Assembly (NCBI GenBank): GCA_024704765.1
Contig: JAKMXF010000066.1
Span: 1,175,883 to 1,239,882, forward strand
From: Oopsacas minuta
Lineage: Eukaryota > Animalia > Porifera
Direction: 5' to 3'
DNA length: 64,000 bases
The notes below the pieces were generated by a model. It had not been told where the DNA came from. It made no database searches and worked only from the letters and a program-made list of their open reading frames with translations. Below are positions 7,210 through 59,008 of the stretch, piece by piece (the first letter of the stretch is position 1; every line of letters starts with the position of its first letter). Made by a program: the position numbers and the translations under genes.

Positions 7210-8247
7210 ATGGATTTTACCTGGGGCTATTTCTTAATTGTGCTTGTTGCAAGCGTTACCAGTTTACCGAATGATGTGTTCAGAATTCCCTATTCAGACG
7301 ATAATTTGCATATCTACGCACTACCCATGGGTGAGGGAGAGAGTACAGTCATACAGTGTCCAGGAGGGGATATCATACTCGTAGATATGGGGAGCTCCGG
7401 CAATGGATGGACAAAAGACAGAGTCTACCAATTCTTGCTGCATCAACTGGAGCGAGTAAAAACAGTTATAATATCCAATACATCGCCTGAACATTATAAT
7501 TACATTCCTACTGTATTACGTACTGTATCCGGCTTACAGCAAATTGTAATAGGAGGTAGATCAGAGTACTACGAGGCTGATAGAGACTTTTCTAGCTGGC
7601 TAGAAGTAAATAATAAGAAAGTGAACTTCTTGAATAGTGGAGAACCTTGTATTACAGATTGTGATATATCTACCATTAGCTGTGGAGATGAAGCAGCAGG
7701 AGTGCAATTGAATGTACTCGGTTCAAATCTGGCACAGAACCACTCAAACTCTGGGGTAATCTTACAATTAGTTTCACAAGAATTCAAGTTATTGCTGCCT
7801 GGAGATTTTACTGGACACGATATGGAGGAGTTGATTATATACGAATGGAACCTTGTAGGATTTTCACTCAGCTCTTCGCACTTTAAACTCTCTAAACACG
7901 GCTCAGCTGATCGAGCTAATGGCGAGAGCTTTCTATTAGCTATCTCTCCTAATTACGCATTCTCTTCCAACGCTTATCCAAACAACTACGATGGTTGGGA
8001 TCCAGATTGTGACATAGTATGGCGACTATTGAACCTGCAAAGTATCCGAAAGAGTAAATACGTGGATTCGTATTCCTGTGGCGACTCAAACGATCATAAA
8101 CCTGTTCGTTACAACAACTGGCCATATGAGATTCATTCTACTTCAGTTGATCAATATTTAGGGAAACTTATTCGTATCAACGTCAATACTACGGATCCTA
8201 TCAACTCAAAAACTTCGCCACAGATATTCTACGTATCTCACGAATAG
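7210..8247 (+). CDS. Secreted metallo-beta-lactamase-fold protein of ComEC/Rec2-like type with degenerate metal ligands, 345 aa
   Basis: Signal-peptide-like N-terminus. Motifs LPMGEGESTVI..ILVDMG, VIISNTSPEH, LLPGD and FKLSKHGS align with ComEC-MBL motifs (DVGQGDA, LIDxG, SHxHxDH, LFTGD, LKVGHHGS). Confidence 0.8.
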   Translation: MDFTWGYFLIVLVASVTSLPNDVFRIPYSDDNLHIYALPMGEGESTVIQCPGGDIILVDMGSSGNGWTKDRVYQFLLHQLERVKTVIISNTSPEHYNYIPTVLRTVSGLQQIVIGGRSEYYEADRDFSSWLEVNNKKVNFLNSGEPCITDCDISTISCGDEAAGVQLNVLGSNLAQNHSNSGVILQLVSQEFKLLLPGDFTGHDMEELIIYEWNLVGFSLSSSHFKLSKHGSADRANGESFLLAISPNYAFSSNAYPNNYDGWDPDCDIVWRLLNLQSIRKSKYVDSYSCGDSNDHKPVRYNNWPYEIHSTSVDQYLGKLIRINVNTTDPINSKTSPQIFYVSHE

Positions 8248-15663: not shown

Positions 15664-16755
15664 ATGACTGTAATGCGAATATTTTATCATATCTCTGATG
15701 TGTTACTCGTTGTTAGTTGCATAGTTATGTCAATTGTCGTCATCTTTTGGTTGTTGTACTGTCTCCACGAAATATACACAAATTACAAATTACACAAAAA
15801 TCTAAAATTGAGGTACAATGACCATGAGGTGAGTTTTAAGATGATACGCCTTAAGAAAAATATTGTCAGAGACACTCTATTGATTCTTGGATTACTTAGC
15901 GAAATTTTCGTAGCATTTCTAGTTACTTTCAATGTACTTTTTCCTGTTTCTAACAATTATATTGATGGATTGACTACCCAAGTAGTTGCTGCGAAATTCA
16001 ACTGTACCAAAGTAGTTGAGGGAAGCAATGTGTTATTCTTCGCGCATTTCGGTAGTCTTGTGATCGTGACTGACGGTTTACTTCTAGGAACATTTCTCTT
16101 ACAGATAAGGCTGTACAAAATCATCCTGGATTTCTTCATTAAGGAGTATCAGTGTGTTTCTATGGCCAAAGAGTTTTATTTCAGTTTGACAGGAACTTGC
16201 GTACAGTTTCTACTTGTATTTGTCCTGAGCTCTATCCTTGAAACGCGCTTAATTGGTGTAACTTTATCCAGTTTCTTCATGACCTTCAATCTCTATTCCA
16301 TTATCCATACAGCCAAACGCTTGTATTCTCTCCTAAAAAGCTATCTCCAAGATATCAAACTCATACACAATTATGATGCCCAACTAGAATACAAAAAAGT
16401 ATACAAAATGACTCGAAAATTCAAAATTTCACTGAACATATTCACCATACTTTTCTCTACCATCACTTTTGGTGTATCTGTCTATGTATTTGGCTGCACA
16501 TGGATAGAGTGGTTGTTTCTATTTGATTGTAAATCGGTCAATCCCTTTTCACTTCGGATCAATATCAGTGATTCGACTGAGGATATTCTGTTACATATTA
16601 GCTTGTTTGCAAGGATAGTGCAATCTTTTGCTGGTTTTATATACTATACTGGTACCATTGGTGTAAGTATAGTGCTGGGATGGAGTTCGTTGTATAGTTT
16701 TAGGAAAAACCGGTATATTCCAGTTGATCAAGGCTTGATTAGACCTTTGGTATAG
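15664..16755 (+). CDS. Orphan seven-transmembrane (GPCR-like topology) protein, 363 aa, intronless
   Basis: Seven hydrophobic segments counted by eye; N-glycosylation sequons NCT and NIS in loops; no recognisable class A/B/C motifs. Confidence 0.8.
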   Translation: MTVMRIFYHISDVLLVVSCIVMSIVVIFWLLYCLHEIYTNYKLHKNLKLRYNDHEVSFKMIRLKKNIVRDTLLILGLLSEIFVAFLVTFNVLFPVSNNYIDGLTTQVVAAKFNCTKVVEGSNVLFFAHFGSLVIVTDGLLLGTFLLQIRLYKIILDFFIKEYQCVSMAKEFYFSLTGTCVQFLLVFVLSSILETRLIGVTLSSFFMTFNLYSIIHTAKRLYSLLKSYLQDIKLIHNYDAQLEYKKVYKMTRKFKISLNIFTILFSTITFGVSVYVFGCTWIEWLFLFDCKSVNPFSLRINISDSTEDILLHISLFARIVQSFAGFIYYTGTIGVSIVLGWSSLYSFRKNRYIPVDQGLIRPLV

Positions 16756-17336: not shown

Positions 17337-20300
17337 ATGACACTAAACTACGATTGTTCCTCTCGAATTGTGACATTTGCGACAGGACAGAATGAAAACC
17401 AACCTGACGACACACAACCACATAACCATATGACGTCACCCTCAGATAAAAATGAACTAGAAACAGTCTACTCTACGTCACGACAACAAATAGATATTCT
17501 CTCAAATTATCTCACTCAATCTACAAAGGAAGTAAATACTAATACAGATAGTTTAACTTTTTTCCAGCCGGTAGAATTCGATGATAGTACCTCAGTTGAG
17601 GAAGAGATAGGTCAATACAATCTACGTCCTGTTAATAAAACAATTGTAAAAACTGAGCTTTCGACAAAGGGCTTGACGCCCTCCCCAAGTGTATGTCTCG
17701 GCTCAACATTATCGCTACCAGCTAAACGCACTGAGGAATATCAAAGTGGATCAAAACTATCATCACAGTCACTTCAACAACAACAACAGGAAGTCAAAGA
17801 TAACGAAACATACAGTACTTCTGGCCTAGAAGCAAAGCAGATTCAGAAACGTAATGTTGTATTCGACGTACTTACCCGTTTATCACGATCCAAGCTCTCT
17901 GAAGACAGACCCTCTGATGACATGCGTCAATACTGGATGGCAGATCGTACTTGTAAAGAATGCTATGAATGCGGGCAGGTTTTCACGACTTTTCGCCGTC
18001 GCCATCACTGTAGAATATGTGGACAGATATTCTGTGCAAAATGCTGTAGCGAGTACGCTCCCGGGCAAATGTTTGGCTTAAACACGAATCAGAGAGTATG
18101 TTCATATTGCCATCGTGTTATCCGTGTATACGCACAAACTACTAGTGGTACTGCAGACATGAATAATTTCCTTATGGAAACTAGCAATTTATCCCAGCAA
18201 AAACCAAAGTTTTTATCTTACTCCGTTAACGATTCTAACGAAACATACGACATACCATTCAATCCAAATTTTGCTTCAAACACTCCTGCAAAGATTAACC
18301 TTAAAACTGAGCCAAATATTAAAGTAGTAAATAGTCAAGGTAGTCTTGATATAGATCCTAGTCATATTGATGTAGTAGATGAAGAGGATCAGCTACCGAT
18401 TGCTAAAGACACGCTATTAGCTGTTTGGATGAAAATGCAGGATTTAGACTCAGGACTAACTCTGCAGACACAGCGTCATAGATTCAAACACTATCGTAAT
18501 GCCATTACAGGTGCTCAGGTTGTAGATTGGCTATTATCGAATAAAATAGCAGAAACGCAACATTACGCTGAAAATATAGGAAAAGCACTGGTTGATGCCA
18601 AATGGTTAACTCCAGCAACGAATTCAACTATACCTTTTAAGAACGATAATCGTCCGTATAATCTCGTGTACTCAACTAACGTACAAGATTCTAAGTTACC
18701 ATTGGAGAAAGATAAAGCTGATCCTCTCTGGTTACAAGCTATTGACTTTAATGATGAAGATGATGAAATGTTTGATTTACATAAAAACGAAACTGGAAAT
18801 ATTCCCCATCGTGATTCAATTTCTAAGCGGGACGCGAATCAACCTTCTGAATCGAATTTTCATCTACCAACCGTTTCAAAATTCGATACCAATAATGACA
18901 CCAAACGAAGCAGCATGGCAACTAAATTAGACGAAGGTGTTAGTTTTGTAGATGCATATCTTGGCAATTCATATATAATGTCACCAAGTCTCCCTTTACG
19001 TAGAGCTAGTTCACTTGGGCAACTCAATATAACCCAACCAAGCGATTTCCCTCGCATAGATATTGAGCATTTTCGTGATTCGGTTGAATTAAGGCTTACA
19101 GATTCCTTACCCGCAGTAGATAAATTCGATTCTAGCATGTACAATAGTAAACGTGTAGGTTCAGATCCCTGTCTTCTTGATAAAACAATGTATTTGGATA
19201 GTAATAGCGGTACTCTTAATGATCGCCACACTTCAATGAAAGGCATTTTCCGGAAATCTTTCCATGAATTCGATGAGGGTGAAGCCCAAAAACGACTTGA
19301 TCAATACACAAAGACACATTTGAGTTCATTGATGCTACAGGAATTATATCAAGGAGGGTTATCGTCTAAATGGTTCGATGTACTTATGCCGATTATCACG
19401 GAAATAAGTCAAACAGTTCGTCTGAACCTTCAACATGATGAAGTGATTGATATCCGAAAGTTTGCGAAATTTAAAAAGGTATCTGGTGGCGCAATGGCCG
19501 ACAGTGAAATAATATACGGAGTTGTTTGTAGTAAAAATCTTACGAGCAAACACACGCAAAAGTATTACAATAAACCAAAAGTCCTACTATTGCGATGTGC
19601 TTTCGAATTTGAACGTAAAGAAAACAAAATCTCGTCATTCGATATGTTAATAATGCAGGAAAAAGAGTACATATCAAACTTAGTTAATAAAGTATTAGCT
19701 TTAGAGCCGAATTTAGTTATTGTAGAAAGATCTGTAGCAAGAATTGCCCAGGAAATGCTAATAAACAATGGAATTACTCTTGTCACTAATATGAAATCAA
19801 GCGTTATCAATAGGATAGCCCGTAGCACAGCTGGTCACCAATTAGTCTCACTGGATCAATTATCATGGGAGATACAGTTAGGTGTTTGTAAGAAATTCTT
19901 TCTTAAAACTTTCACTATTTCTGAAAATGAAACTAAAACTTTGATGTTTTTCGAAGGCTGTCCTCCAGTGCTAGGCTGCTCAGTCTGTCTGAGAGGTGGA
20001 AGTAGAAAAGAATTGATTAAAATTAAAAAAATCGCGAATTTCGTGCTACTTTCCGCATACAACCTACATCTAGAGAATGCTTTTATCAGAGATACATTCA
20101 CGAAACCTCTTCCTATACGTACTCTCCCGAAGTATAGTTTATCATCTGGCTACCCCACGCCCCCATCAAGCCCTCGTTTAAAATTCGCCCCAGCAATTCA
20201 ACACACAAACGGGTTATGTGAAAATGCACTGCCATTATCCGGTCAATCATTATGTACAGAACCTTCAGAGGAATTAACACAAGACCTAACAACGCCATTC

Positions 20301-23300
20301 TATAAGGTATTTGAAAAGCATATATTTACGCTATCACCTCATTTAGTATTGAATCCCCCATATCTGCATACATACAATGGTACACTGAGTAAAGTTAGAA
20401 AATACCTACCTAATATGCTATACTGGTCGAATCAATTTGAATCAATTGATGCCTCTGTTGTTATGGGAATTGATGAGGCGAATTTTTCACGTGAAACTCT
20501 ATGTAATTCCCTCACACAGCTTGATAACCTATCCGTGTTCAGAGGATTATCGTTCATTTCAAACAGAAAACCTGATATTGATAGGAAAAAAGGCAAAAGT
20601 GGAACTTACAAAAAGTTTGATAGCAACAGTAATAATTATTCTACGTCAGTGACGTCACACAAAACGTATTCAGTAGATTCCAGTAGTAATCTACCTGCTG
20701 GTTTTGTCAAGGGAATTACATTCAAACCAACTGATTACTTTTCTTCGAGCACTTCTCATTGGTTTGTGAATGCTATCATACTCGGCACAGCTCCGAAAAA
20801 TACGTTCGATGGGCTCCTAGCTAATTATCGTGCAACAGCACAGTTTAGCCATTTACATCAAGATCAATACCCTATCAGTCTGTATTTGAAATATCCTGAT
20901 GTGAAAATTGAGCAGTACCAATTGCAAGATAATTCTATCGAATCAAAACTGTTATTAAATGATGAAAAGAGTACTGAATTAGATCAGAAAATCGATGTGC
21001 TTCCCACATCAGAATATTTGGAATTAGATCACGACGATTATTTGGAGGACTTCACCTATTCCACAAAGCGTGTGGACTGTTTTGACATGAAGTATCATCA
21101 AAAAATTCCAGTCTTGTTCAGTTCAAATTCGATAGAATCACCTAACTGGCCTCTTGCTTGTATTAAGCCATGGGTAATTATAATGGATTTCTACGGCAAG
21201 CGAGATATAGATCTTTACAATTTCCTAATGAAATATTGTTTCCGTCCAAATTACAATTGTCTAACAGACAAGTGTAGAGTAAAAATGAACAAACATTTAC
21301 GGTATTTTGCACACGGTGATGCAGCTATATTTCTCCGTACTGACGTCATCAAAGAACTATCCTCTGAATTTGAACGTATAAGAACCTGGGGGCAGTGTAT
21401 CACTTGTAAATCAAGTACTCCAGTTTCCATTTTATCTCCAGAAGCACAAGCCTTTTCATTCGCGAAATTTCTAGAGCTAAAATTCTATGGAAAACACTTA
21501 ATTCGGCGGTTATCTTCACAACAATGCACTCATGCTGTATTCAGTGATCAAATTCAATTTTTTTCTTATGGAAAATGGATTGCAGCTTTTGAATATCAGA
21601 AATTGAACTTGAAAGATGTCGTCCTAACTTCATCTCTGTTAACTTTTGATGCTAAAACACTGTTATTAAATCAAGATTGGGCAAAAGAGCTCAAATTTCT
21701 TAACAGCAAAATGGCAGAAACTTTCAATTTACTCTACACAAAACTAGAAATATTGAACAAGTCGCTTATTTCCGAAGAATCCACGATATCTGAGTATAAA
21801 ATCAAACTAGCTCACGAAGAAACAGACCTAATGGAAAAGGTGAAATCACTAATAGCAAAAGCAGATGAATTCGGATGTTTTTCAAACGACCCTCAAATAC
21901 ACGACAACACTCAATCTTTTTATAAAAGCACTTTAGAATACTTACAAGATCATCTAGCCTATATTAAAGGGGTTTTCTCAAAGGCAATACGCAAATGGAA
22001 CAATTTGTACCAAGGATTAGTAGACTCCGACAGTGTCTCGAAGCAACAAAAGTCCATCCCTGGCCCGTCTAGTAGAACCTACTCCGATTTTACTCCCTCA
22101 ACAACAACTAAAGAGTTTTCTGTAAGCAATACTATCCCTGAAGAAATTGATAATAAATACATTGATTATGATAACTTTGAAGTAGACAGTGAACAATCGA
22201 ATCCAGATTTATCTTCTCTTAGTAGTGGTCGTGGGTCTCTCATACAACATAGTGATCATTACAGTTTACCATCCAGTCCTGTTAAGAGTAGTGCAGCATT
22301 CATGGTTTTTCCAAAACAAAATAGCCTCACTGCTCCTTCGACCTCAGAGGTACATGGTGAGGTGTACGCCCCCTCTGATTTTCCGACACAGGAACCGCCA
22401 AAACGACAAATGTCTGAACCACCGAATTTTAACACACAAAAGACAAAATCTTTAGGTAGAATGGGTAACAAAGATTTTATTGAGAAAAAACGACCTTCAA
22501 TTCAAAAAGGATTTTTCACTCCAGTCCCTTTACCATTCAATACTGGCGATCACTTTACACTTGAGTGCGGGCAAATACCTCTTGCTATCTATGAGAGTGA
22601 ACCTTCATCGATCATTGCTTACGGATTAAACTCTACGTCATATAAGGATAAATTAAGCCAACTCTTACGCTTGGAAAAGACTACGAAAAAGAATAATATT
22701 TCAGGGACATATTCTAACGATCTAGCTGAGGAAGATCGATCAGTAAAATCGGATATTAACTCTGATCATGAGGAACATATTGAATTAGAATTTGAAGATA
22801 GCGGTACTCATTTTTATTGTAAAGTTTTCTATGCGCAGCAATTCATGCGATTGAGAGAGGAAATATATTCAGAAGGGGAAGACTGTTTTATCCGTTCTCT
22901 CTCACGATGTGTCGATTGGGCGGCTAGAGGCGGGAAAACACGCGCCACATTTCGTAAAGTCCTTGACAACCAGTTTATTATCAAACAAATGTCACGAACG
23001 GAAGTTGATTCATTTATAACATTTGCTAACAGTTATTTTGCGTACATCAAAAGTATGATTGGAAACGAGAAACCTACAACTCTCGCTAAAGTGCTCGGAG
23101 TATATCGTATTGGATTTCGAAACACTATTACGAATCAATCAATGAAAGAAGATGTGTTAGTAATTGAAAATTTGTTTTATTTGCATAAATGCTCGAAAGT
23201 TTTCGATTTGAAAGGTTCACTAAGAAACCGTTACCTACAACCAAATAACAAAGATAGTGATGTACTATTAGATGAGAACCTTCTTGAGTATATCGGTCAA

Positions 23301-23657
23301 ACACCGATATTTCTCCGTCCACATGCAAAAAGCGTGCTAGCGTGTGCCATAGAAAACGATTCAGCATTTCTTTCCCGTCACCTCATCATGGATTATTCGC
23401 TACTCGTTGGCATAGATGAAGAAAGTCAACAGTTATTAGTTGGTATAATAGATTATATCAGGACATTTACTTGGGATAAAAAACTAGAAATGTGGGTGAA
23501 GAGTAGCGGAATACTTGGAGGCGGCGGCAAAGCACCAACCGTGATCTCACCTGAAAAGTATAAAAAGAGATTTTGTGAAGCTATTGATAAATATTTCCCA
23601 ATGGTTCCTGATAAGTGGACAGTGATTGGGACGGAAAAAATTCATTTATCATCCTGA
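17337..23657 (+). CDS. PIKFYVE: 1-phosphatidylinositol 3-phosphate 5-kinase PIKfyve/Fab1, 2106 aa, intronless
   Basis: FYVE finger (YWMAD..CKECYEC..FRRRHHCRICGQIFC), DEP domain (GAQVVDWLL), CCT/Cpn60-like domain, and PIP5K domain (ARGGKTRA, FDLKGS, MDYSLLVG, IIDYIRTFTWDKKLE, PTVISPEKYKKRF). Confidence 0.97.
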   Translation: MTLNYDCSSRIVTFATGQNENQPDDTQPHNHMTSPSDKNELETVYSTSRQQIDILSNYLTQSTKEVNTNTDSLTFFQPVEFDDSTSVEEEIGQYNLRPVNKTIVKTELSTKGLTPSPSVCLGSTLSLPAKRTEEYQSGSKLSSQSLQQQQQEVKDNETYSTSGLEAKQIQKRNVVFDVLTRLSRSKLSEDRPSDDMRQYWMADRTCKECYECGQVFTTFRRRHHCRICGQIFCAKCCSEYAPGQMFGLNTNQRVCSYCHRVIRVYAQTTSGTADMNNFLMETSNLSQQKPKFLSYSVNDSNETYDIPFNPNFASNTPAKINLKTEPNIKVVNSQGSLDIDPSHIDVVDEEDQLPIAKDTLLAVWMKMQDLDSGLTLQTQRHRFKHYRNAITGAQVVDWLLSNKIAETQHYAENIGKALVDAKWLTPATNSTIPFKNDNRPYNLVYSTNVQDSKLPLEKDKADPLWLQAIDFNDEDDEMFDLHKNETGNIPHRDSISKRDANQPSESNFHLPTVSKFDTNNDTKRSSMATKLDEGVSFVDAYLGNSYIMSPSLPLRRASSLGQLNITQPSDFPRIDIEHFRDSVELRLTDSLPAVDKFDSSMYNSKRVGSDPCLLDKTMYLDSNSGTLNDRHTSMKGIFRKSFHEFDEGEAQKRLDQYTKTHLSSLMLQELYQGGLSSKWFDVLMPIITEISQTVRLNLQHDEVIDIRKFAKFKKVSGGAMADSEIIYGVVCSKNLTSKHTQKYYNKPKVLLLRCAFEFERKENKISSFDMLIMQEKEYISNLVNKVLALEPNLVIVERSVARIAQEMLINNGITLVTNMKSSVINRIARSTAGHQLVSLDQLSWEIQLGVCKKFFLKTFTISENETKTLMFFEGCPPVLGCSVCLRGGSRKELIKIKKIANFVLLSAYNLHLENAFIRDTFTKPLPIRTLPKYSLSSGYPTPPSSPRLKFAPAIQHTNGLCENALPLSGQSLCTEPSEELTQDLTTPFYKVFEKHIFTLSPHLVLNPPYLHTYNGTLSKVRKYLPNMLYWSNQFESIDASVVMGIDEANFSRETLCNSLTQLDNLSVFRGLSFISNRKPDIDRKKGKSGTYKKFDSNSNNYSTSVTSHKTYSVDSSSNLPAGFVKGITFKPTDYFSSSTSHWFVNAIILGTAPKNTFDGLLANYRATAQFSHLHQDQYPISLYLKYPDVKIEQYQLQDNSIESKLLLNDEKSTELDQKIDVLPTSEYLELDHDDYLEDFTYSTKRVDCFDMKYHQKIPVLFSSNSIESPNWPLACIKPWVIIMDFYGKRDIDLYNFLMKYCFRPNYNCLTDKCRVKMNKHLRYFAHGDAAIFLRTDVIKELSSEFERIRTWGQCITCKSSTPVSILSPEAQAFSFAKFLELKFYGKHLIRRLSSQQCTHAVFSDQIQFFSYGKWIAAFEYQKLNLKDVVLTSSLLTFDAKTLLLNQDWAKELKFLNSKMAETFNLLYTKLEILNKSLISEESTISEYKIKLAHEETDLMEKVKSLIAKADEFGCFSNDPQIHDNTQSFYKSTLEYLQDHLAYIKGVFSKAIRKWNNLYQGLVDSDSVSKQQKSIPGPSSRTYSDFTPSTTTKEFSVSNTIPEEIDNKYIDYDNFEVDSEQSNPDLSSLSSGRGSLIQHSDHYSLPSSPVKSSAAFMVFPKQNSLTAPSTSEVHGEVYAPSDFPTQEPPKRQMSEPPNFNTQKTKSLGRMGNKDFIEKKRPSIQKGFFTPVPLPFNTGDHFTLECGQIPLAIYESEPSSIIAYGLNSTSYKDKLSQLLRLEKTTKKNNISGTYSNDLAEEDRSVKSDINSDHEEHIELEFEDSGTHFYCKVFYAQQFMRLREEIYSEGEDCFIRSLSRCVDWAARGGKTRATFRKVLDNQFIIKQMSRTEVDSFITFANSYFAYIKSMIGNEKPTTLAKVLGVYRIGFRNTITNQSMKEDVLVIENLFYLHKCSKVFDLKGSLRNRYLQPNNKDSDVLLDENLLEYIGQTPIFLRPHAKSVLACAIENDSAFLSRHLIMDYSLLVGIDEESQQLLVGIIDYIRTFTWDKKLEMWVKSSGILGGGGKAPTVISPEKYKKRFCEAIDKYFPMVPDKWTVIGTEKIHLSS

Positions 23658-24363: not shown

Positions 24364-27300
24364 ATGTCACTTGGCTTTCACTTAAATGAAGTCCCTCTCA
24401 TTTCTGCATGTCTACTCAACAAGATGAATGAAGTAAAGACTCTTATCGACCAATTAGTTGATGTAAATGCTCAAGATTCTGAGAGAAGGACAGCTCTACA
24501 CGTGGCTGCACACTTTGGGCACTATGAATGTATTAAAATATTACTCAATAAAAATGCGAGGCCATCTCCCAAGGATAGTAGATGGTTAACTCCGTTACAT
24601 AGGGCTTGTGCCATGGGTCATGATGATATTGTTAAGCTATTGATTGACAATACTGCTGAGGTACTGTACTTTAATGGTGTAGTTATTTGTTATATTCGTA
24701 GTCAACCCTCGTTATATCGAAGCTCAAAGGAATGCGCTAATTATTTGGTGAAATATTTGTACAATATCAGACGTCAATATAAGCGGGTATTTTAAATTAA
24801 AATATCCGTGTTTGAATAACAGGAGTTGATTGTACTTAATTTCACTGAGTATTAACCGGGAAAAATTTCGAAAATTTGTGGGATTTCTTCGCCATGCTAC
24901 AATAATTGACTGTAATTTCATTTTAGGTAACAGCCCGAGACAAGAACTGGATGACTCCATTACACATAGCAGCTAATAACAACCATGTAGCTTGTGCTGA
25001 AATAATAATACCAACACTACTACATCTCAATATAGCAGATCGTACCGGCAAGACTAGCTTACATCACGCAGCTTATAACGGTCATATTGAGATGACGTCA
25101 TTATTAATTCGTCACGGTGCGAACATTTCAGCTAACGATAAGCGACAGCGGACTTCCTTACACTGGGCAGCATTTGCAGGTAATGTAGAAGTAATTACAG
25201 AGCTGGTAAACAACGGTGCGGACACGAACTCGAAAGATAAACTCGGTTATACCCCACTACACTGCGCTTCTGCTTCTGGAGAGCTCGCTGCTGTCATGAA
25301 ACTGTTAGAACTATCAGCTGACGTGACTGTCGTCACGATTAATGGGGCTACAGCCTTGCATGTAGCTTGTCAAAGTGGTCAAGATGATATTATCCGTGTG
25401 TTGATAAAGAATTCTCCTGATTTGGATATAACTAATGCGAAAGGTGAAACACCATTACATCTAGCTGCGTTCTGTAGAGTACAATCAGACGGTCTGGAGC
25501 TTATGGTGGAAGCTAAAGCTTCTCTAAACCAAAAATCCGAAGATGGACGTACTCCGCTACATCTCGCTTGCACCAGAGGGCCACCAAGTCGTGTACAGTG
25601 TCTATTAAGCAATGAAGCTGAAGTGAACGTATCTGACAATGAAGGTAACTTCCCTATACATTTGGCTGCGAAAAATGGACTCCCAATGGTTCTTAACATC
25701 CTAATAGAACAAGGAGCAAACGTCCATTCCAAAGGCGGTTCAGGGATGCTACCATTACACATGGCTTGTCTATACTCACATGTAGAATGTGTACGGTTAT
25801 TGCTGGAACAAATGACCAAGGATGACATACGTCAAACTCTTGATGAAGAGAAGCGGTCAGTGTTACACGCAGCTGCATGCGGAGGTTCAATTGACTGTCT
25901 TAAAATGATACTCGAACAGGGAGTGGAAATAAACGGAAAAGATATATACACACGTACTCCATTACATTATGCCTCTGCTCATGCTAAATTGAATTGTATT
26001 ACAGAGCTAATTGCTCATGGAGCTCTTGTTAATGTATCCGATAAATTCGGTCGTACTCCACTGCACTATGCTTCTACTTCTGATGAAGATGGTCGTTGTG
26101 TTAGTCATTTACTTAAGAAGCAGGCTAAAGCGAACAAGAAAGATATAGAGCTATTTAACCCAGCTCATTACGCGTCGCGTTTTGGTAGAAAACTTGTGTT
26201 ACAAATGTTGCTAGATAACTCCGCATCAGATTTGCTAGCTCATGGCAGTGGAATGCCAAAGACTACTCCATTACACTTAGCTTCGTATCATGGTCATTTT
26301 ACACTTGTGGATATACTAGCTAGACATTTGCATTCGTTAGATGCTAAAGATGCTCAGGGAAGGACTGCATTAGATCTCGCGGCTTTTCAAGGCCACAGTG
26401 AAGTGTTGGAGGTCCTTATCTCTCAGATTTCCGCGAAAATTATCTCATCTGACGGTCCAGAACGCCTGCATCATGATGAAGCCTTGCTTAGTAAAGATAC
26501 AGTGTCACAACGCACTGCCTTGCATGCTGCAGCAATGAATGGGCACACTTCATGTTTGAGAATTATTCTAGATCATTTAACTGATCCACAGCAAGCTGAT
26601 GTACGTGACAACACATGTAGGACTCCATTAATGGTAGCAGTAGCTAATGGACATTCCGATTGTGTACAGTTGTTGCTAGGGAATAACACTAATATTGATG
26701 CTAGAGATAAAGAGCATAGAACAGCATTACATAGAGCAGCTGCTTACGGATACGAGGAATGTGTTGATGCGCTATTACAACATCGTGCTGACGTCAATAT
26801 TCGAGATGTACAGGGGAAAACAGCTGTACATTTTGCTGCAGCATGTGGCCACGTGGCCTTGCTTAATAATTTACTGCGAGTACGTGGATGTGTGCATGCA
26901 GCGCAGGATAAGCGAGGTTTCACTGCACTACACTGGGCTGCTTATAAAGGTCATCATAAAAGCGTTGAATGCTTATTAGAGATACCAAGCTTATCCAGCG
27001 ATGATCCTGAATGGAAAGGCAATCCATTTTCACCTTTACACTGTGCTGTAGCAAATGACCATGAACCTTGTTGTGATATATTATTCGATTCATTTGACAG
27101 TGATATTATCAATTCTAAAGATAGTAAGGGTCGAACTCCATTACATGTTGCAGCTTTTTACAATTCACCCGATTGTCTACAGATATTACTAACGAAAGAA
27201 GTATTGGTTAATTGTCAGGATGATGATAAAATGACTCCGTTGATGATGGCTGCAAAAGCTGGTCATTCTAATGTAATAGGAATTTTAATGTCTTGTACTG

Positions 27301-27968
27301 GGATTGAAGGCCCGAATATATTTGAGACAGATCTATACGGGAATACAGCGTTACATATAGCTTGTATTGAAGGTAATGGTGATTGCGCATTGTTACTACT
27401 TGAAAAGGCTGGAGTAAACGCGATTTCTATTTGCAATGATCGACAACAGACTCCGTTACATATTTCAGCAAACAAGGGATTGGTTAATGTTGTAGTGGAA
27501 TTGATTCGTTTAGGTTCAAACGTATACGCAATGGATAAAGACCTGCATACACCTGCATTGTGTTGTGCTTCTAATAGCGATACGGTAAAATGTCTGGAGA
27601 TTATTCTTAATGCTTTGCTTAATCCTGAAAAATATGAAAAATCTCACAAAGGTGAAATGAATGAAAGTTCTGAGATACATGAAATATCTGAGACACTCGA
27701 AAAATCTGAAATTTCTGAACTAAACGAAAAATCTGGAACAGTAGATGAGAATCACGAGAAACCTCAAGTACAACAATCAGAAATTCAAGAAAAACCTGAA
27801 ACACATGAAAAATCAAAAGTAGCTGAAAAATATGAGATACATGAGAAATCTGAGATTTCTGAAGGACTCGAAAATTCTGAGATTTTTGAAATTCCTCAAA
27901 TATCTGGAAAACCTGGAAAAACTGAACATTCTGAACAAACTGAAACACCAGCAGAAAGAACTTCGTAA
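24364..27968 (+). CDS. ANKRD28: Ser/Thr protein phosphatase 6 regulatory ankyrin repeat subunit (ANKRD28/44/52 family), 1112 aa
   Basis: Exons 24364-24660 and 24927-27968 (phase-0 GT-AG). About 25 or more ankyrin repeats; VNAQDSERRTALHVAA..KDSRWLTPLHRA..VTARDKNWMTPLH matches the family N-terminus. The paralog cannot be resolved. Confidence 0.9.
24699..24832. mobile_element. MITE family A, in ANKRD intron 1
   Basis: Left TIR tagtcaaccctcgttatatcgaagctcaaagg; core atatttgtacaatatcagacgtcaatataagcggg; right TIR gtttgaataacaggagttgattg|TA. Confidence 0.75.
27621..27955 (+). repeat. Coding degenerate 9-nt repeat (GAA-AAA-TCT type) giving an (E-x-x)n tail
   Basis: Recurrent gaaaaatctgaaatttctgaa, gagaaatctgagatttctgaa and gaaaattctgagatttttgaa; Glu at nearly every third residue. 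Confidence 0.8.
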
Positions 27969-53999: not shown

Positions 54000-56604
54000 A
54001 TGAGTTCAAAGGAAACTATCTTGGAGTATCTCCAAAACCAAAAGAATCAAGCATCTAGCCCTGAAGTAGCAGAGATATGGAGTAACCTCCTTCATCTGTA
54101 TACACATAAATTATGGCATCAGCTGACTGTATTATTACAAGACTTTATTCCTAAGATGTCTTCTGGCCGTGTAGAGCTATACAAGAAGTTTATTACTGAT
54201 TTTGAACACAGTCTTAGTGCACTGTCTCTAGTGCAGATGATATTGCATGTAAGTTTGGAAAGGATCGGATTAGTAATTATGTTCGAATTACAGTCAACTC
54301 CAGTTATTTCTATTTCAATGGACCGTGATAATTACTTCGACAAAACTGACGAATTTTCTGTAACTTTGACGGTTTTGTGACCATATTTGTACAATTTCAG
54401 ACTTCGATATATGCGTGTTCTATATAGCGGAAGTTGACCTTATTTCGCGAAAATATTCCGCGATTCCGCTAATACTTCATACCACACACATACCTCACTT
54501 ATTTTTATGGTCATTTCCTTGATTTTACGCTACTAAAGATTCTTCATAAGATATAACGACCCACGCGTGTCATATTATCTGTAATATGCGAAACCTGACA
54601 ATTATAAATTACTGCTGATATATATTGAATTGGTTAGAGAGTTTAATTTCTATTTAAATCCATTCTGTTCAGATTTTATTTGTCAATCAGTATTTGATTA
54701 TTTATGGTTAGAATTTGATATTCGCTACGGCAATTTCTAGATACCAGTAAAACGATTTTAAATAGAAAATGAACTCTTTCAACCAATGGTTTAGTAATAA
54801 ATTTACAATTATCCTCAAATACATTACAAAATGATTTAATACATTGCTCCAGGTACTGGACGAGCTTACAGACCCGTTAGAAGCATTATCCTTACTGAAA
54901 TCAGTTCTCGATAAAGTTAAGCTTCATCCTGAAGCTAAAGGTCTCTGTTTATCAGCTATAGCAGTGTGTTATCTCACGAATAATGAGGTAGCGGAGTGTA
55001 AAGAGAGATTACAGGAAGCTGAAATACTATTGGAGAATTCTGATATGGAGGTATAATGATCGAAAATATCGAAAGATCTGAGAAAATATCGGGAAATATC
55101 GAAAAAATATCAAATCTCGAAATTTAAAAGTAATGACCGACTTTTCACCATAATTCGATATTTCTTAAGTATTTTCTCTATATTTCTATATTTTCCTATT
55201 TTCAGAAATATCGAGCTGATATTTATCGTATCTGGTAATTCCTTATATTTCATATCGTATCAGAGATTTACCTGATATCGATATTAGCCAAATCTTGAAA
55301 CAGCTGTTTAATTTTTAATCAGATCATACTTCAAAAATCCAAATTATTCTCATAATATCGTTAAACCAAATATGTATATAATAGACAACCTAGAATTTGA
55401 TTTATAAGTTGAGTAATTAATTGAAAATTGGCAAAGAATTGTGAATTAATCAAGTATAAGCAGTTTATAGAGCCAATAAATCTTATCTTATAACTGCTGT
55501 AATACCAAATGAGAAGCAATTTCTATGCCTCAATTATTCCATATTATCCGTTTTGGAATTTATTGAATTATATTCTTATTTATGGATTTTCCCAAAGTCT
55601 GTATTTCTCACATGATTTTTGAGAAATGTTTATTATATTATTTGAGTGCATCTCTGCCATATAAACTTGTATTAATCCCAATATTTGGCAACGCGACAAC
55701 TTAAGCGGGTTAAATGACAGACACATTTTTTGAACAAATATGTCTCAACTCTCAATTATGCGGAGTCTACTGTACAAGTAGTTACGTATTCGAAAATTTC
55801 TACTTTTCGCTAATTTGATTCGATGTACATGAGTGTCCAAATTACCATATATTTACAGTATCTACCATATAGGTTGGTACAGTACATGCTTATTACTACA
55901 AAACTAGTAGTGAGTATTACCGTTACACAGGACAACATGCTCTATACTATAAGGCAGCTCTACGTTACCTTGGATGCCAAACTAGCATCAAACATTTCGA
56001 TAAAGACTCTCCCCCAGAGTTTATAACTACGAGTATTGAGGCTGATCGTGAACATGCATTTTCTCTAGCAATTGCCGCAATTATTGCCGAAGGGGTGTAT
56101 AATTTCGGTGAAATTCTACTTCACCCGATTCTACAAACTTTAAAGGGAGATCCTGACAGGGTCTGGGTTATTGATTTACTACGCGCTTTTAACAGGGGTG
56201 ATATAAAGCGCTTTGAAGAATCAAGGCAATCTTGGAGCGACCAAACCGATTTGAAATCAAACGAAATTATCCTTCAACGAAAACTACGACTTTTATCGCT
56301 TATGGAATTGACTTTTCAGCGTCAAGCAACCCAAAGGACCCTCCCCTTCTCTCTAATATCTGAAATAGCTCATGTTCCAGTTGATGAAGTAGAACAACTT
56401 GTAATGAGAGCATTTAGCCTCGGATTAGTAAAAGGTGATATTGATGAGGTTGATAAAGTAGTTCACTTGAGGTGGGTACAACCACGTGTGTTAGACCTTG
56501 GCCAAGTTAAGAGTATGTCACATAATATAAAGATATGGGGCCAGAAAATAGTTACAGCACTTGATCTATTAGATAATCAGGTTACCCAAGATTTACTAGT
56601 ATAA
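54000..56604 (+). CDS. PSMD13: 26S proteasome non-ATPase regulatory subunit 13 (Rpn9), 392 aa
   Basis: Exons 54000-54248, 54853-55050 and 55873-56604 (phase-0 GT-AG). LYTHKLWHQLT; YYKAALRYLG; GVYNFGEILLHP; PCI domain VEQLVMRAFSLGLVKGDIDEV..WVQPRVL. Confidence 0.95.
54291..54440. mobile_element. MITE family A, in PSMD13 intron 1
   Basis: TA|CAGTCAACTCC..ggaccgtgataattac..tttgacggttttgtgaccatatttgtacaatttcagacttcgata..gttctatatagcggaagttgacct|TA. Confidence 0.75.
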
Positions 56605-57101
56605 TTGCATAATTGGTTGTTAGTGAGATTGGGTTAGGTTCATGTTTACGTGAAATTTGTAATTGATACGTGTTTTGTTATTAATTGATTAGTTGTTGAT
56701 TACATTAATTAATGATTTGACTATTAATATGACACGTGATTTGTATGCATTAGAATTAGAAACGATAGCAACTTGGGTATATAATTAGTTGATAAGCTGG
56801 AATTATGAGTTTTGAAATTATTGCAATATGACGAATGATACGATTTTTTATCAGAACTTTTCGAACTTGACAGGATAATCGGTGAGGCAACAAAAGGAGC
56901 TAGAATTTTTCAGAATAGTTTATTTCTGATCAATTTCTGCGATTTTGCTTGCTCGCTACGCTTGCTTTGAGCCATTATAACGATTTAGATAAAAATCGCA
57001 GGAATCATGCATGCGTGAATAATTATGATTGATAACAATAGAAGATGTAAAGTTATGCATGTGATGACTATTTATACCATAATTTCGCTTTCTAAAGTTG
57101 A

Positions 57102-57167
57102 AATACATCTATAATACATCTATAATACATCTATAATACATCTATAATGCATCTCTAATACATCTAT
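57102..57167 (+). repeat. Tandem repeat, 11-bp unit AATACATCTAT x6
   Basis: Five perfect units and one with two substitutions. Confidence 0.92.
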
Positions 57168-57823: not shown

Positions 57824-59008
57824 ATGGCAAGTTTCCTAGACTACACAACGTACAAATACGTAACAGTCCGAGACAAGCGTCTGGGTATTACCTACTATAT
57901 TTTCGCATTTCTAATATTCGCCTACCTCCTACAAGACATATTCATTGACAAGGGTTATCTAAAAATAGACACTAATCCACATGGTACACTCAGATTACTT
58001 GTGAAAGATCCGAACAACGAAGCGCCTATAACTGACCTCCCATATTGCCCGGAATTCGCTGGCGACGCTCCAGGCAAATTCCAATACAATCGCACTGACC
58101 CTTGTGTTGACTATGATGCCCAAGAGCTGTCATGGCCTCCTGAAGCTCATGCAGTTAACATTATGACGTATGGCAAAGATAACTGGCAAGAACGGAAGAA
58201 AAATGAGAAAGGTTCTTACAATTTTGAGACAATTAGTGAAAAACAATATTTCACTCGCAATCCTGAAACGACTATACTCAAAATCGATCATTCTATAATT
58301 TCATCACTATTTTCTGGGAAATATCTTCTTGGAGGTTCGCATCGTACAATGCTTGGATTCTTAGTTGGCAAAGATGATAACATTATTCGAAAAGTTTCCG
58401 AATCAGAGAAACCAGATAAATTGAAAGTAAGTGAGCTATTAAAAGCCGCAGGAATCGATACACTTGATCAACTTTCAGATTCACTTAGTGGAGATAGTGA
58501 ATCTTTCCGTATGCGAGGCCTGATCCTAAAAATATCCATTTATTACACAAACCATGAGCATAAATGGTTCGGGACTGGACAAATACATTACACATATAAG
58601 ATACAGCATATACCACTGGTTGACTACCAAACAAAACAAATAATTCCGATAATGAAAGAGAAATCAAATGAGGAATTAGAAACTGAAATATTCCACACTA
58701 ACAAACGGCTACTGCGGAAACGTTATAGCCTACGGCTGATATTTGAGCAAGAAGGAAGTTTAGGTAAAACCTCATTAAACGCACTAATCTATCAACTAAT
58801 CGCCGGCACAAGCTTGCTAACATTATTAGCTACTGTTATTGATGTGGTTGCTCTAAATTTGATTCCAACCTATTCACGTTATATGATGGATTCTAGCCCT
58901 GAATTGGGGAAGAAGGAAGGAGAAATTGCTGGTGGAAAAGATAAAGATGATGCTGTATCTGTTGATGAGGGTGTATCTGGTACTGGTGAAGGGAAAAAGG
59001 ATCAATAG
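57824..59008 (+). CDS. P2X purinoceptor-family ATP-gated cation channel, Cys-poor Dictyostelium-like type, 394 aa, intronless
   Basis: Likely start MASFLDYTTYK (YxTxK motif); RDKRLG-TM1-KGY; LLRKRYSLRLIF..G.LG-TM2 with the conserved Asp (ATVID). The ORF-track start at 57719 lies inside a MITE. Confidence 0.9.
   Translation: MASFLDYTTYKYVTVRDKRLGITYYIFAFLIFAYLLQDIFIDKGYLKIDTNPHGTLRLLVKDPNNEAPITDLPYCPEFAGDAPGKFQYNRTDPCVDYDAQELSWPPEAHAVNIMTYGKDNWQERKKNEKGSYNFETISEKQYFTRNPETTILKIDHSIISSLFSGKYLLGGSHRTMLGFLVGKDDNIIRKVSESEKPDKLKVSELLKAAGIDTLDQLSDSLSGDSESFRMRGLILKISIYYTNHEHKWFGTGQIHYTYKIQHIPLVDYQTKQIIPIMKEKSNEELETEIFHTNKRLLRKRYSLRLIFEQEGSLGKTSLNALIYQLIAGTSLLTLLATVIDVVALNLIPTYSRYMMDSSPELGKKEGEIAGGKDKDDAVSVDEGVSGTGEGKKDQ

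Follow-up and report, generated by a model that had tools for sequence, protein, structure and literature searches.

The window analysed here is a 64,000-nucleotide stretch of the genome of the glass sponge Oopsacas minuta (Porifera; GenBank assembly GCA_024704765.1, contig JAKMXF010000066.1, positions 1,175,883 to 1,239,882 of the forward strand), and the subject of this work is a P2X receptor gene that lies at positions 57824..59008 of the window, on the + strand. Taken together, our results favor, with a probability that we put at roughly 85%, the view that this gene represents, in hexactinellids, the orthologue of metazoan Branch 1 P2X receptors, the cysteine (Cys)-poor, Dictyostelium-type branch of the family, as opposed to the canonical Cys-rich P2X1-7 receptors of Branch 2; that it is a native and constrained gene with the P2X fold; that its product would work as a nucleotide-gated trimer; and that it was inherited by vertical descent.

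The gene and its locus

The P2X reading frame runs from the ATG at 57824 to the stop codon at 59006-59008 on the + strand, and its 394 codons are uninterrupted. The frame reported by the open reading frame (ORF) caller extends 35 codons further upstream, to a TTG, but we placed the start at the ATG because all orthologues begin at the matching Met, within a common Met-(Ala/Ser/Gly)-Ser-Phe-Leu. The features of the gene, with positions in the window, residues in amino acids (aa), transmembrane helices abbreviated as TM and the AlphaFold 2 model as AF2, are as follows.

57824..59008, + strand: complete single-exon coding sequence of a Cys-poor (Branch 1, Dictyostelium-type) P2X subunit, based on the ORF, Pfam, the predicted fold, collinear orthologues and the ratio of nonsynonymous to synonymous substitution rates (dN/dS)
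57842..57856, + strand: N-terminal YxTxK, Y7-T-T-Y-K11, a conserved cytoplasmic P2X motif, aligned to 'DYETPK' of human P2X2 and 'YDTPR' of human P2X1
57875..57946, + strand: predicted TM1 helix, aa 18-41, from hydropathy and AF2 (predicted local distance difference test, pLDDT, ~97); the best-matched stretch for Pfam and for P2X sequences in the PDB
57947..58774, + strand: predicted ectodomain, aa 42-317, mostly beta, with neither the canonical Cys-rich head pattern nor NFR; the AF2 model aligns to solved P2X ectodomains with a root-mean-square deviation (rmsd) of 3.0-3.6 Å over 250-290 residues
58046..58048, + strand: Cys75, probable disulfide partner of Cys94
58103..58105, + strand: Cys94, just before the conserved (W/Y)D motif Y97-D98
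58718..58723, + strand: K299-R300; K299 is aligned by hidden Markov model (HMM) to human P2X1 K309, equivalent to residue 320 of human P2X2, an ATP-phosphate-binding lysine, and R300 is a branch-conserved basic residue
58775..58861, + strand: predicted TM2 pore helix, aa 318-346, from hydropathy and AF2, including Asp340 (58841-58843), which is aligned to the TM2 Asp of human P2X1 and P2X2
58862..59005, + strand: cytoplasmic C-terminal tail, predicted to be disordered (pLDDT <50 from aa 370) and fast-evolving
58871..58885, + strand: YSRYM, aa 350-354, degenerate counterpart of the YxxxK motif that follows TM2

The single-exon reading is supported by seven hexactinellid orthologues of 389-395 aa that are collinear with the window protein from Met to stop, which speaks against the possibility, allowed in the initial annotation, that additional exons supply a Cys-rich head. 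The description in that annotation of an intronless gene for 394 aa, with two Cys and no NFR, was borne out by the ORF reading and by residue counts. The orthologue of Vazella pourtalesii (P0003; EukProt EP00800) is 86% identical and is encoded by a complete ORF on a Trinity transcript, six more proteins of 389-395 aa from ENA assemblies show 79-88% identity, and another shows 59%. Eight hexactinellid lineages have an intact frame, and the Vazella transcript, together with two transcriptome contigs of Aphrocallistes vastus, documents that relatives express the gene.

Selection on the protein is strong, with a dN/dS of 0.029 against Vazella, a comparison in which dS is saturated, and only the C-terminal tail is relaxed (0.29 for aa 356-393, vs 0.01-0.04 in the rest of the protein). 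Codon use is native, with a GC content at third codon positions (GC3) of 0.32 and a cosine of 0.94 to the pooled neighbor genes. The absence of introns is no sign of foreign origin, because long single-exon genes are common in this intron-poor genome; for example, a PIKfyve-type lipid kinase with FYVE, DEP, Cpn60_TCP1 and PIP5K domains occupies a single 2106-aa ORF at 17337-23657 (+ strand) of the window. The neighbors are ordinary animal genes: PIKfyve, KIF9, ERMP1, TRAF/MATH and ankyrin genes lie further away in the window, and two other genes flank the P2X gene as syntenic anchors.

56095..56604, + strand: upstream neighbor, the last coding part of PSMD13, a 26S proteasome subunit (Pfam PCI and PSD13_N), found in matching order in Vazella contigs L001-L003
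59544..59996, + strand: downstream neighbor, ribosomal protein S19e (RPS19e; Pfam Ribosomal_S19e, 173 bits), whose order is retained in L001-L004

The gene order PSMD13-P2X-RPS19e is conserved on the Vazella-bearing contigs L001-L004. The P2X gene is therefore a native, intact and strongly constrained glass-sponge gene. A decaying or non-functional relic could be suspected from a Pfam match confined to the TM1 and TM2 ends and from the missing canonical motifs, yet a frame intact across eight lineages, the low dN/dS (with saturated dS), transcripts in Vazella and A. vastus, and a confident fold prediction contradict such decay, which we regard as very improbable.

Fold, cysteines and conserved residues

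Family membership was first indicated by Pfam P2X_receptor (PF00864), which matches mainly at aa 5-52 with 43.2 bits (gathering cutoff 27) and an E-value of 3.6e-11. Searched with phmmer against PDB sequences, the window protein retrieves only P2X1, P2X2 and P2X4 chains, and only around TM1 and TM2, and a profile of the orthologues matches chains of P2X1, 2, 3, 4 and 7 with E-values down to 1e-12. Hydropathy and the AF2 model agree on two hydrophobic segments forming two TM helices. The model, computed from a 117-sequence alignment (pLDDT 89.0; predicted template modelling score 0.82), replaced one from 11 sequences (pLDDT 64.5), and places a beta-rich ectodomain between helices 18-41 and 318-346. 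Its 50 best PDB entries in VIA-align are all P2X receptors, headed by human P2X3 (5svk; Z 17.6, rmsd 3.6 Å over 287 residues) and including apo human P2X2 (9ogh; Z 17.1, 3.1 Å over 258 residues) and tick P2X (5f1c; Z 16.4). In addition, Foldseek matched P2X with an E-value of 1e-11 when given the earlier, poorer AF2 model, and the ESM Atlas model of the protein is nearest to a 'P2X receptor B' cluster (TM-score 0.73). The product is thus a P2X family member with, as modelled, the full subunit fold of TM1, beta-rich ectodomain and TM2.

This fold is shared with the canonical receptors, among them zebrafish P2X4, human P2X3 and tick P2X (Z 15-17.6, rmsd ~3-3.6 Å, 250-290 residues), as are the two-TM topology, YxTxK, the equivalents of R305 and K309, and the TM2 Asp. 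In contrast, identity to canonical P2X is only 12-19%, recognizable sequence similarity is confined to the surroundings of TM1 and to the stretch from beta-14 to TM2, and the window protein lacks the ten ectodomain Cys, NFR, KxKG and YxxxK. In canonical receptors the ten Cys pair into five disulfides, and three of these belong to the head domain. None of this set is present in the window protein, which contains exactly two Cys, C75 (LPYCPE) and C94 (DPCVDYD), and a motif scan of its 394 aa found no NFR. A 2013 review had likewise described DdP2XA as devoid of cysteines at positions equivalent to the canonical ten (PMC3853471).

The two remaining cysteines are a property of the branch. In alignment A4, which comprises 117 Cys-poor P2X proteins, 13 of them animal, and is the basis of all column counts given below, C75 is Cys in 115/117 proteins and in 13/13 animal ones (it is also invariant in alignments A1-A3), and C94 is Cys in 114/117. 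The pair is near-universal across the animals, amoebozoans and alveolates of the Cys-poor branch, suggestive of one branch-specific disulfide. Both residues lie ahead of the segment aligned to the canonical WD motif; the segment after C94 (xWD...P..E) aligns to 'VWDVEEYVKPPE' of human P2X2, and the C75/C94 segment, between beta-1 and the (W/Y)D motif, appears longer than its human P2X2 counterpart, although this alignment stretch scores below significance. On the evidence of their co-conservation, C75 and C94 probably form a branch-specific disulfide loop.

Apart from the cysteines, the columns H156 (113/117), D198 (111), R229 (115), G232 (117), N243 (112) and R300 (106) are conserved throughout the branch, and the window protein has the consensus residue in all eight of these branch-wide columns, C75 and C94 included (each 106-117/117). 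R295 (95/117), which HMM alignment places opposite human P2X1 R305, and R57 (89/117) are conserved less widely, and the YxTxK motif has Y in 96/117, T in 97/117 and K/R in 87/117 proteins. K299 is Lys in all 13 animal proteins but in only 24/117 overall; the positions held by K299 and Y301 in the animal clade are N/D and H in most of the branch. K118, K153, R174, D219 and Y301 are also invariant in the animal clade, and K199 is also listed among the animal-specific invariant residues. At D340, Asp is found in 91/117 and Glu in 19/117. The initial annotation had proposed that two candidate ATP-binding lysines and the TM2 Asp are kept. One lysine and the Asp hold up, as K299 and D340 align to human P2X1 K309 and the TM2 Asp; the other, probably K61, is less certain, as only a weak pairwise alignment places it opposite a Lys of KxKG, and outside the hexactinellids a single animal sequence shares it. 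The KxKG position itself reads LVKD.

Behind TM2, the aligned position of the degenerate YxxxK was confirmed as YSRYM, as annotated before. Y350 is present in 100/117 proteins, and position 354 is Lys in 81/117 and in 0/13 animal proteins, so the loss of YxxxK concerns the entire animal subclade rather than the window protein alone. The near-universality of C75/C94 in the branch, this loss in the animal subclade and the invariance of K299 in animals are small additions to what is known of the branch.

Branch assignment and descent

A profile of sponge and dictyostelid homologues was searched against 1.84 billion cluster representatives. Profile A1, which contained a diatom-type sequence, drew marine protist P2X proteins over animal kin and was rebuilt without that sequence as A2. 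The search returned 2059 proteins at E<=1e-3, of which 206 reach E<=1e-30. The best 150 of the 2059 matches score at least 135 bits and mostly have few Cys and no NFR, whereas canonical P2X chains from the PDB reach at most 50 bits with the sponge and dictyostelid profile; no canonical P2X was found among the word-index search hits or these best 150 matches. Ten of the best 150, including the Cys-richest, score 23-74 bits on Pfam's canonically seeded model, and the Cys-richer or NFR-containing hits that were scanned are low-scoring Branch 1-like proteins. The named animal kin are 'P2X receptor E-like' proteins of Sycon ciliatum and Hydractinia symbiolongicarpus, 'P2X receptor E' of Stylophora pistillata, 'P2X receptor A-like' of Bolinopsis microptera, and Em0004g666a of Ephydatia muelleri, which falls into one 90% cluster with hit P0009. 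NCBI gives Branch 1 animal proteins the names 'P2X receptor E-like' or 'A-like', and such names also occur in the animal clade described below. The next named kin are the amoebozoans Dictyostelium firmibasis, Polysphondylium, Dermamoeba, Flabellula and Balamuthia and the alveolate Vitrella.

Phylogeny, which had been proposed as a check in the initial annotation, was reconstructed with IQ-TREE (LG+C20+F+G4 with posterior mean site frequencies; alignment of 56 rows and 409 columns, with a Cys-rich diatom-type group as root; support as ultrafast bootstrap/SH-like approximate likelihood ratio test). Besides this rooting group, the rows were proteins of the Cys-poor branch of 330-520 aa, without fragments, and the tree holds no canonical (Branch 2) rows. 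In the IQ-TREE tree the hexactinellids form a clade (100/100), Ephydatia Em0004g666a and one metagenome protein are nearest to them (84/42), and a 13-row animal clade of sponges, cnidarians and ctenophores receives 100/100. This clade, which spans three classes of Porifera together with Cnidaria and Ctenophora, is sister to a Vitrella-containing group (96/91), and the animal proteins lie inside a 27-row clade (100/100) with the dictyostelids outside. A FastTree analysis of 121 rows agrees on the animal clade, with support 99.

These results are in line with a published tree, in which the Branch 1 defined by Dictyostelium contains an animal clade, supported at 100/100, of Amphimedon XP_003385281 and sequences of Nematostella, Acropora, Clytia, Rhopilema and Mnemiopsis (PMC10620158). 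The metazoan Branch 1 set of that study, including Clytia ChP2X1, Nematostella NV2.19100, Amphimedon XP_003385281 and Mnemiopsis ML088815a, would form one clade with the window protein; its data set is without hexactinellids, and our animal clade represents the branch by other proteins, among them those of Sycon, Hydractinia, Stylophora and Bolinopsis. The distribution is alike in both analyses: members come from sponges, cnidarians and ctenophores, and neither bilaterians nor placozoans were seen among them. As judged from sequence, the window protein is a member of the metazoan subclade of the Cys-poor Branch 1. The proposal that it is of the Dictyostelium type rather than the P2X1-7 type is thus upheld by the bit-score gap and by the tree, and the idea of an ancient P2X lineage absent from most animals is supported by the sponge-cnidarian-ctenophore clade.

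The likeness to Dictyostelium itself has to be qualified. The window protein shares the Cys-poor branch with Dictyostelium P2XA-E, is 25-31% identical to dictyostelid homologues, and has in common with them YxTxK, C75/C94, H156, D198, R229, G232, N243, R300 and the TM2 Asp, as well as the lack of the ten canonical Cys. However, Dictyostelium is not the closest branch, since the dictyostelids fall outside the 27-row clade that holds the animal proteins, and they are not the closest non-animal kin in the tree.

An alternative, also raised in the initial annotation, is that an ancestor of glass sponges acquired the gene horizontally from an amoebozoan or other protist, which would explain both the Dictyostelium-like architecture and the missing introns. 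It draws on the single exon and on nearest non-animal tree rows that are protists, such as Vitrella and Balamuthia. The closest relatives, however, are animals, in a fully supported clade across three phyla; at least three introns interrupt the Ephydatia orthologue; the gene order is shared with Vazella; and GC3 and codon use are those of the neighbor genes, in a genome where long single-exon genes are normal. We regard transfer as very improbable. Because of the Vazella synteny, the native codon use, the intron-bearing Ephydatia orthologue and a monophyletic animal clade with a demosponge nearest, the sequence data support ancient vertical descent with loss in other animals. The gene would have come down from the animal ancestor, with Placozoa and Bilateria losing Branch 1 and keeping only the Cys-rich Branch 2. 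This confirms the retention in glass sponges of an old Cys-poor P2X branch missing from bilaterians, with horizontal transfer ruled out at this locus.

Fusion proteins occur among the protist members of the branch. In P0149 (817 aa) the P2X domain is followed by several EF-hand domains, and P0119 has a length of 1479 aa. In the Atlas search, structurally similar clusters were rich in WWE, EF-hand or SAP domains.

Known relatives, gating and location

Branch 1 P2X receptors were reported from sponges, ctenophores and cnidarians in 2023 (Sci Rep; PMC10620158). In 2025, a J Exp Biol paper described Em0004g666a as a 'P2X-like' receptor that lacks the motifs and belongs to a group found only in invertebrates, and its supplementary alignment sets two A. 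vastus orthologues (Avas14669 and Avas10395) beside Em0004g666a and groups the latter with Amphimedon XP_003385281 (PMC11883242). The N-terminal block published there for A. vastus is nearly letter for letter that of the window protein and closest to the orthologue P0005 (PMC11883242). NFR and KxKG are absent from Em0004g666a and the A. vastus proteins, as they are from the window protein. The window protein differs in coming from another glass-sponge species, with Vazella closest (86%). Em0004g666a, an orthologue with 35% identity over 89% of the length and nearest to the hexactinellids in our tree, differs in that its gene has introns, its YxTxK is degenerate and Glu takes the place of the TM2 Asp. 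The window protein is thus an ordinary member of a known, already published animal P2X branch. The novelty implied in the initial annotation is contradicted, as both the class (PMC10620158) and a glass-sponge member (PMC11883242) are in print, and the gene adds little by itself for the same reason.

By analogy with the Dictyostelium receptors, four of five of which are ATP-gated despite having no canonical cysteines and having lost some binding residues (PMC3853471; PMC10620158), we propose that the protein would form a trimeric cation channel, which would open when ATP or a closely related nucleotide binds at the subunit interfaces. Likely ligand contacts would be basic residues that partly coincide with the canonical ones (K299/R300, R295, R229 and perhaps R57/K61), with the animal-invariant K118, K153 and R174 as further candidates, and D340 in TM2 would line the pore.

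Several points weigh against this interpretation. NFR and KxKG are absent; gating of animal Branch 1 receptors by ATP is argued from Dictyostelium rather than from animal electrophysiology; the trimer is extrapolated from an AF2 model of a subunit; the expression evidence comes from Vazella and A. vastus transcriptomes and not from Oopsacas minuta RNA; and the case for a place outside Branch 2 is made by the published tree, the difference in bit scores and the missing motifs, our own tree being one of Branch 1 rows. In addition, the authors who described Em0004g666a doubt its specificity for ATP (PMC11883242).

In one alternative the protein has the P2X fold but is no ATP receptor, and after the loss of NFR, KxKG and the head domain the animal subclade would respond to a different ligand (ADP or some other nucleotide, a metal or pH), or would serve as an auxiliary subunit or as a channel for leak or release. 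The missing motifs fit this possibility, as does the suggestion, in the 2025 paper, that receptors of the Em0004g666a type may be less ligand-specific and accept, for example, ADP (PMC11883242); in addition, the animal-invariant K118, K153, R174, K199 and D219 suggest a remodelled pocket. Against it, Dictyostelium receptors with equal losses are ATP-gated (PMC3853471; PMC10620158), and K299, R295, R229, YxTxK and the TM2 Asp are retained under strong constraint. We consider it unlikely, and a nucleotide-gated channel remains the preferred assignment.

As for location, the sequence decides between neither the cell surface nor an internal compartment, and the loss of YxxxK and the Dictyostelium precedent would fit the latter. 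A vacuolar or lysosome-like channel rather than a surface receptor is suggested by the lack, in 13/13 animal-clade proteins, of YxxxK, which stabilises mammalian P2X at the plasma membrane, and by a single N-glycosylation sequon (N89). On the other hand, a marine glass sponge is not known to have a contractile vacuole. Visual inspection of the tail for di-leucine or lysosomal motifs gave nothing convincing, and no targeting motif was identified in the sequence. External ATP elicits responses in sponges, though these are not tied to a particular receptor. In favor of an internal site, Dictyostelium P2X receptors are found on the contractile vacuole, a vacuolar location being known for Dictyostelium alone; against it, a functional Ostreococcus P2X also lacks YxxxK, reading YESWL (PMC3853471). 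An intracellular channel is a tentative suggestion, credible in part but short of an even chance.

A broader and rather doubtful proposal is that Branch 1 supplies the sole P2X of glass sponges, which would have no canonical P2X; that their receptor has a remodelled pocket (K118, K153, R174 and K299-R300) and a branch-specific C75-C94 loop in place of the Cys-rich head; and that its trafficking was altered after the loss of YxxxK. The sole-P2X part is based on the two A. vastus sequences, both of the Branch 1 type, in the available portion of the published alignment (PMC11883242). If true, this would be the sole P2X of a syncytial, electrically conducting animal, and animals would have a further way of nucleotide gating, different in structure from the first. 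For expression and localisation of an animal Branch 1 P2X, the compact, intron-free and well-modelled gene would be a convenient construct, with C75/C94, R229, R295, K299/R300 and D340 as the list for mutagenesis.

Some minor features were also observed around the gene. The 1.2-kb intergenic region upstream of P2X contains a tandem array of about five copies of an 11-base unit (ATACATCTATA-like) at 57100-57160 of the window. On the Vazella-bearing contigs, a 137-aa gene without Pfam match (L001:7875-8288, with matching genes in L002-L004) is conserved downstream of RPS19e. Further away in the window, three long ORFs on the + strand have no Pfam match at E<=1e-3 (924-2192, 7210-8247 and 15664-16755; 422, 345 and 363 aa), and a 1005-aa ORF at 24951-27968 (+ strand) consists nearly entirely of ankyrin repeats.

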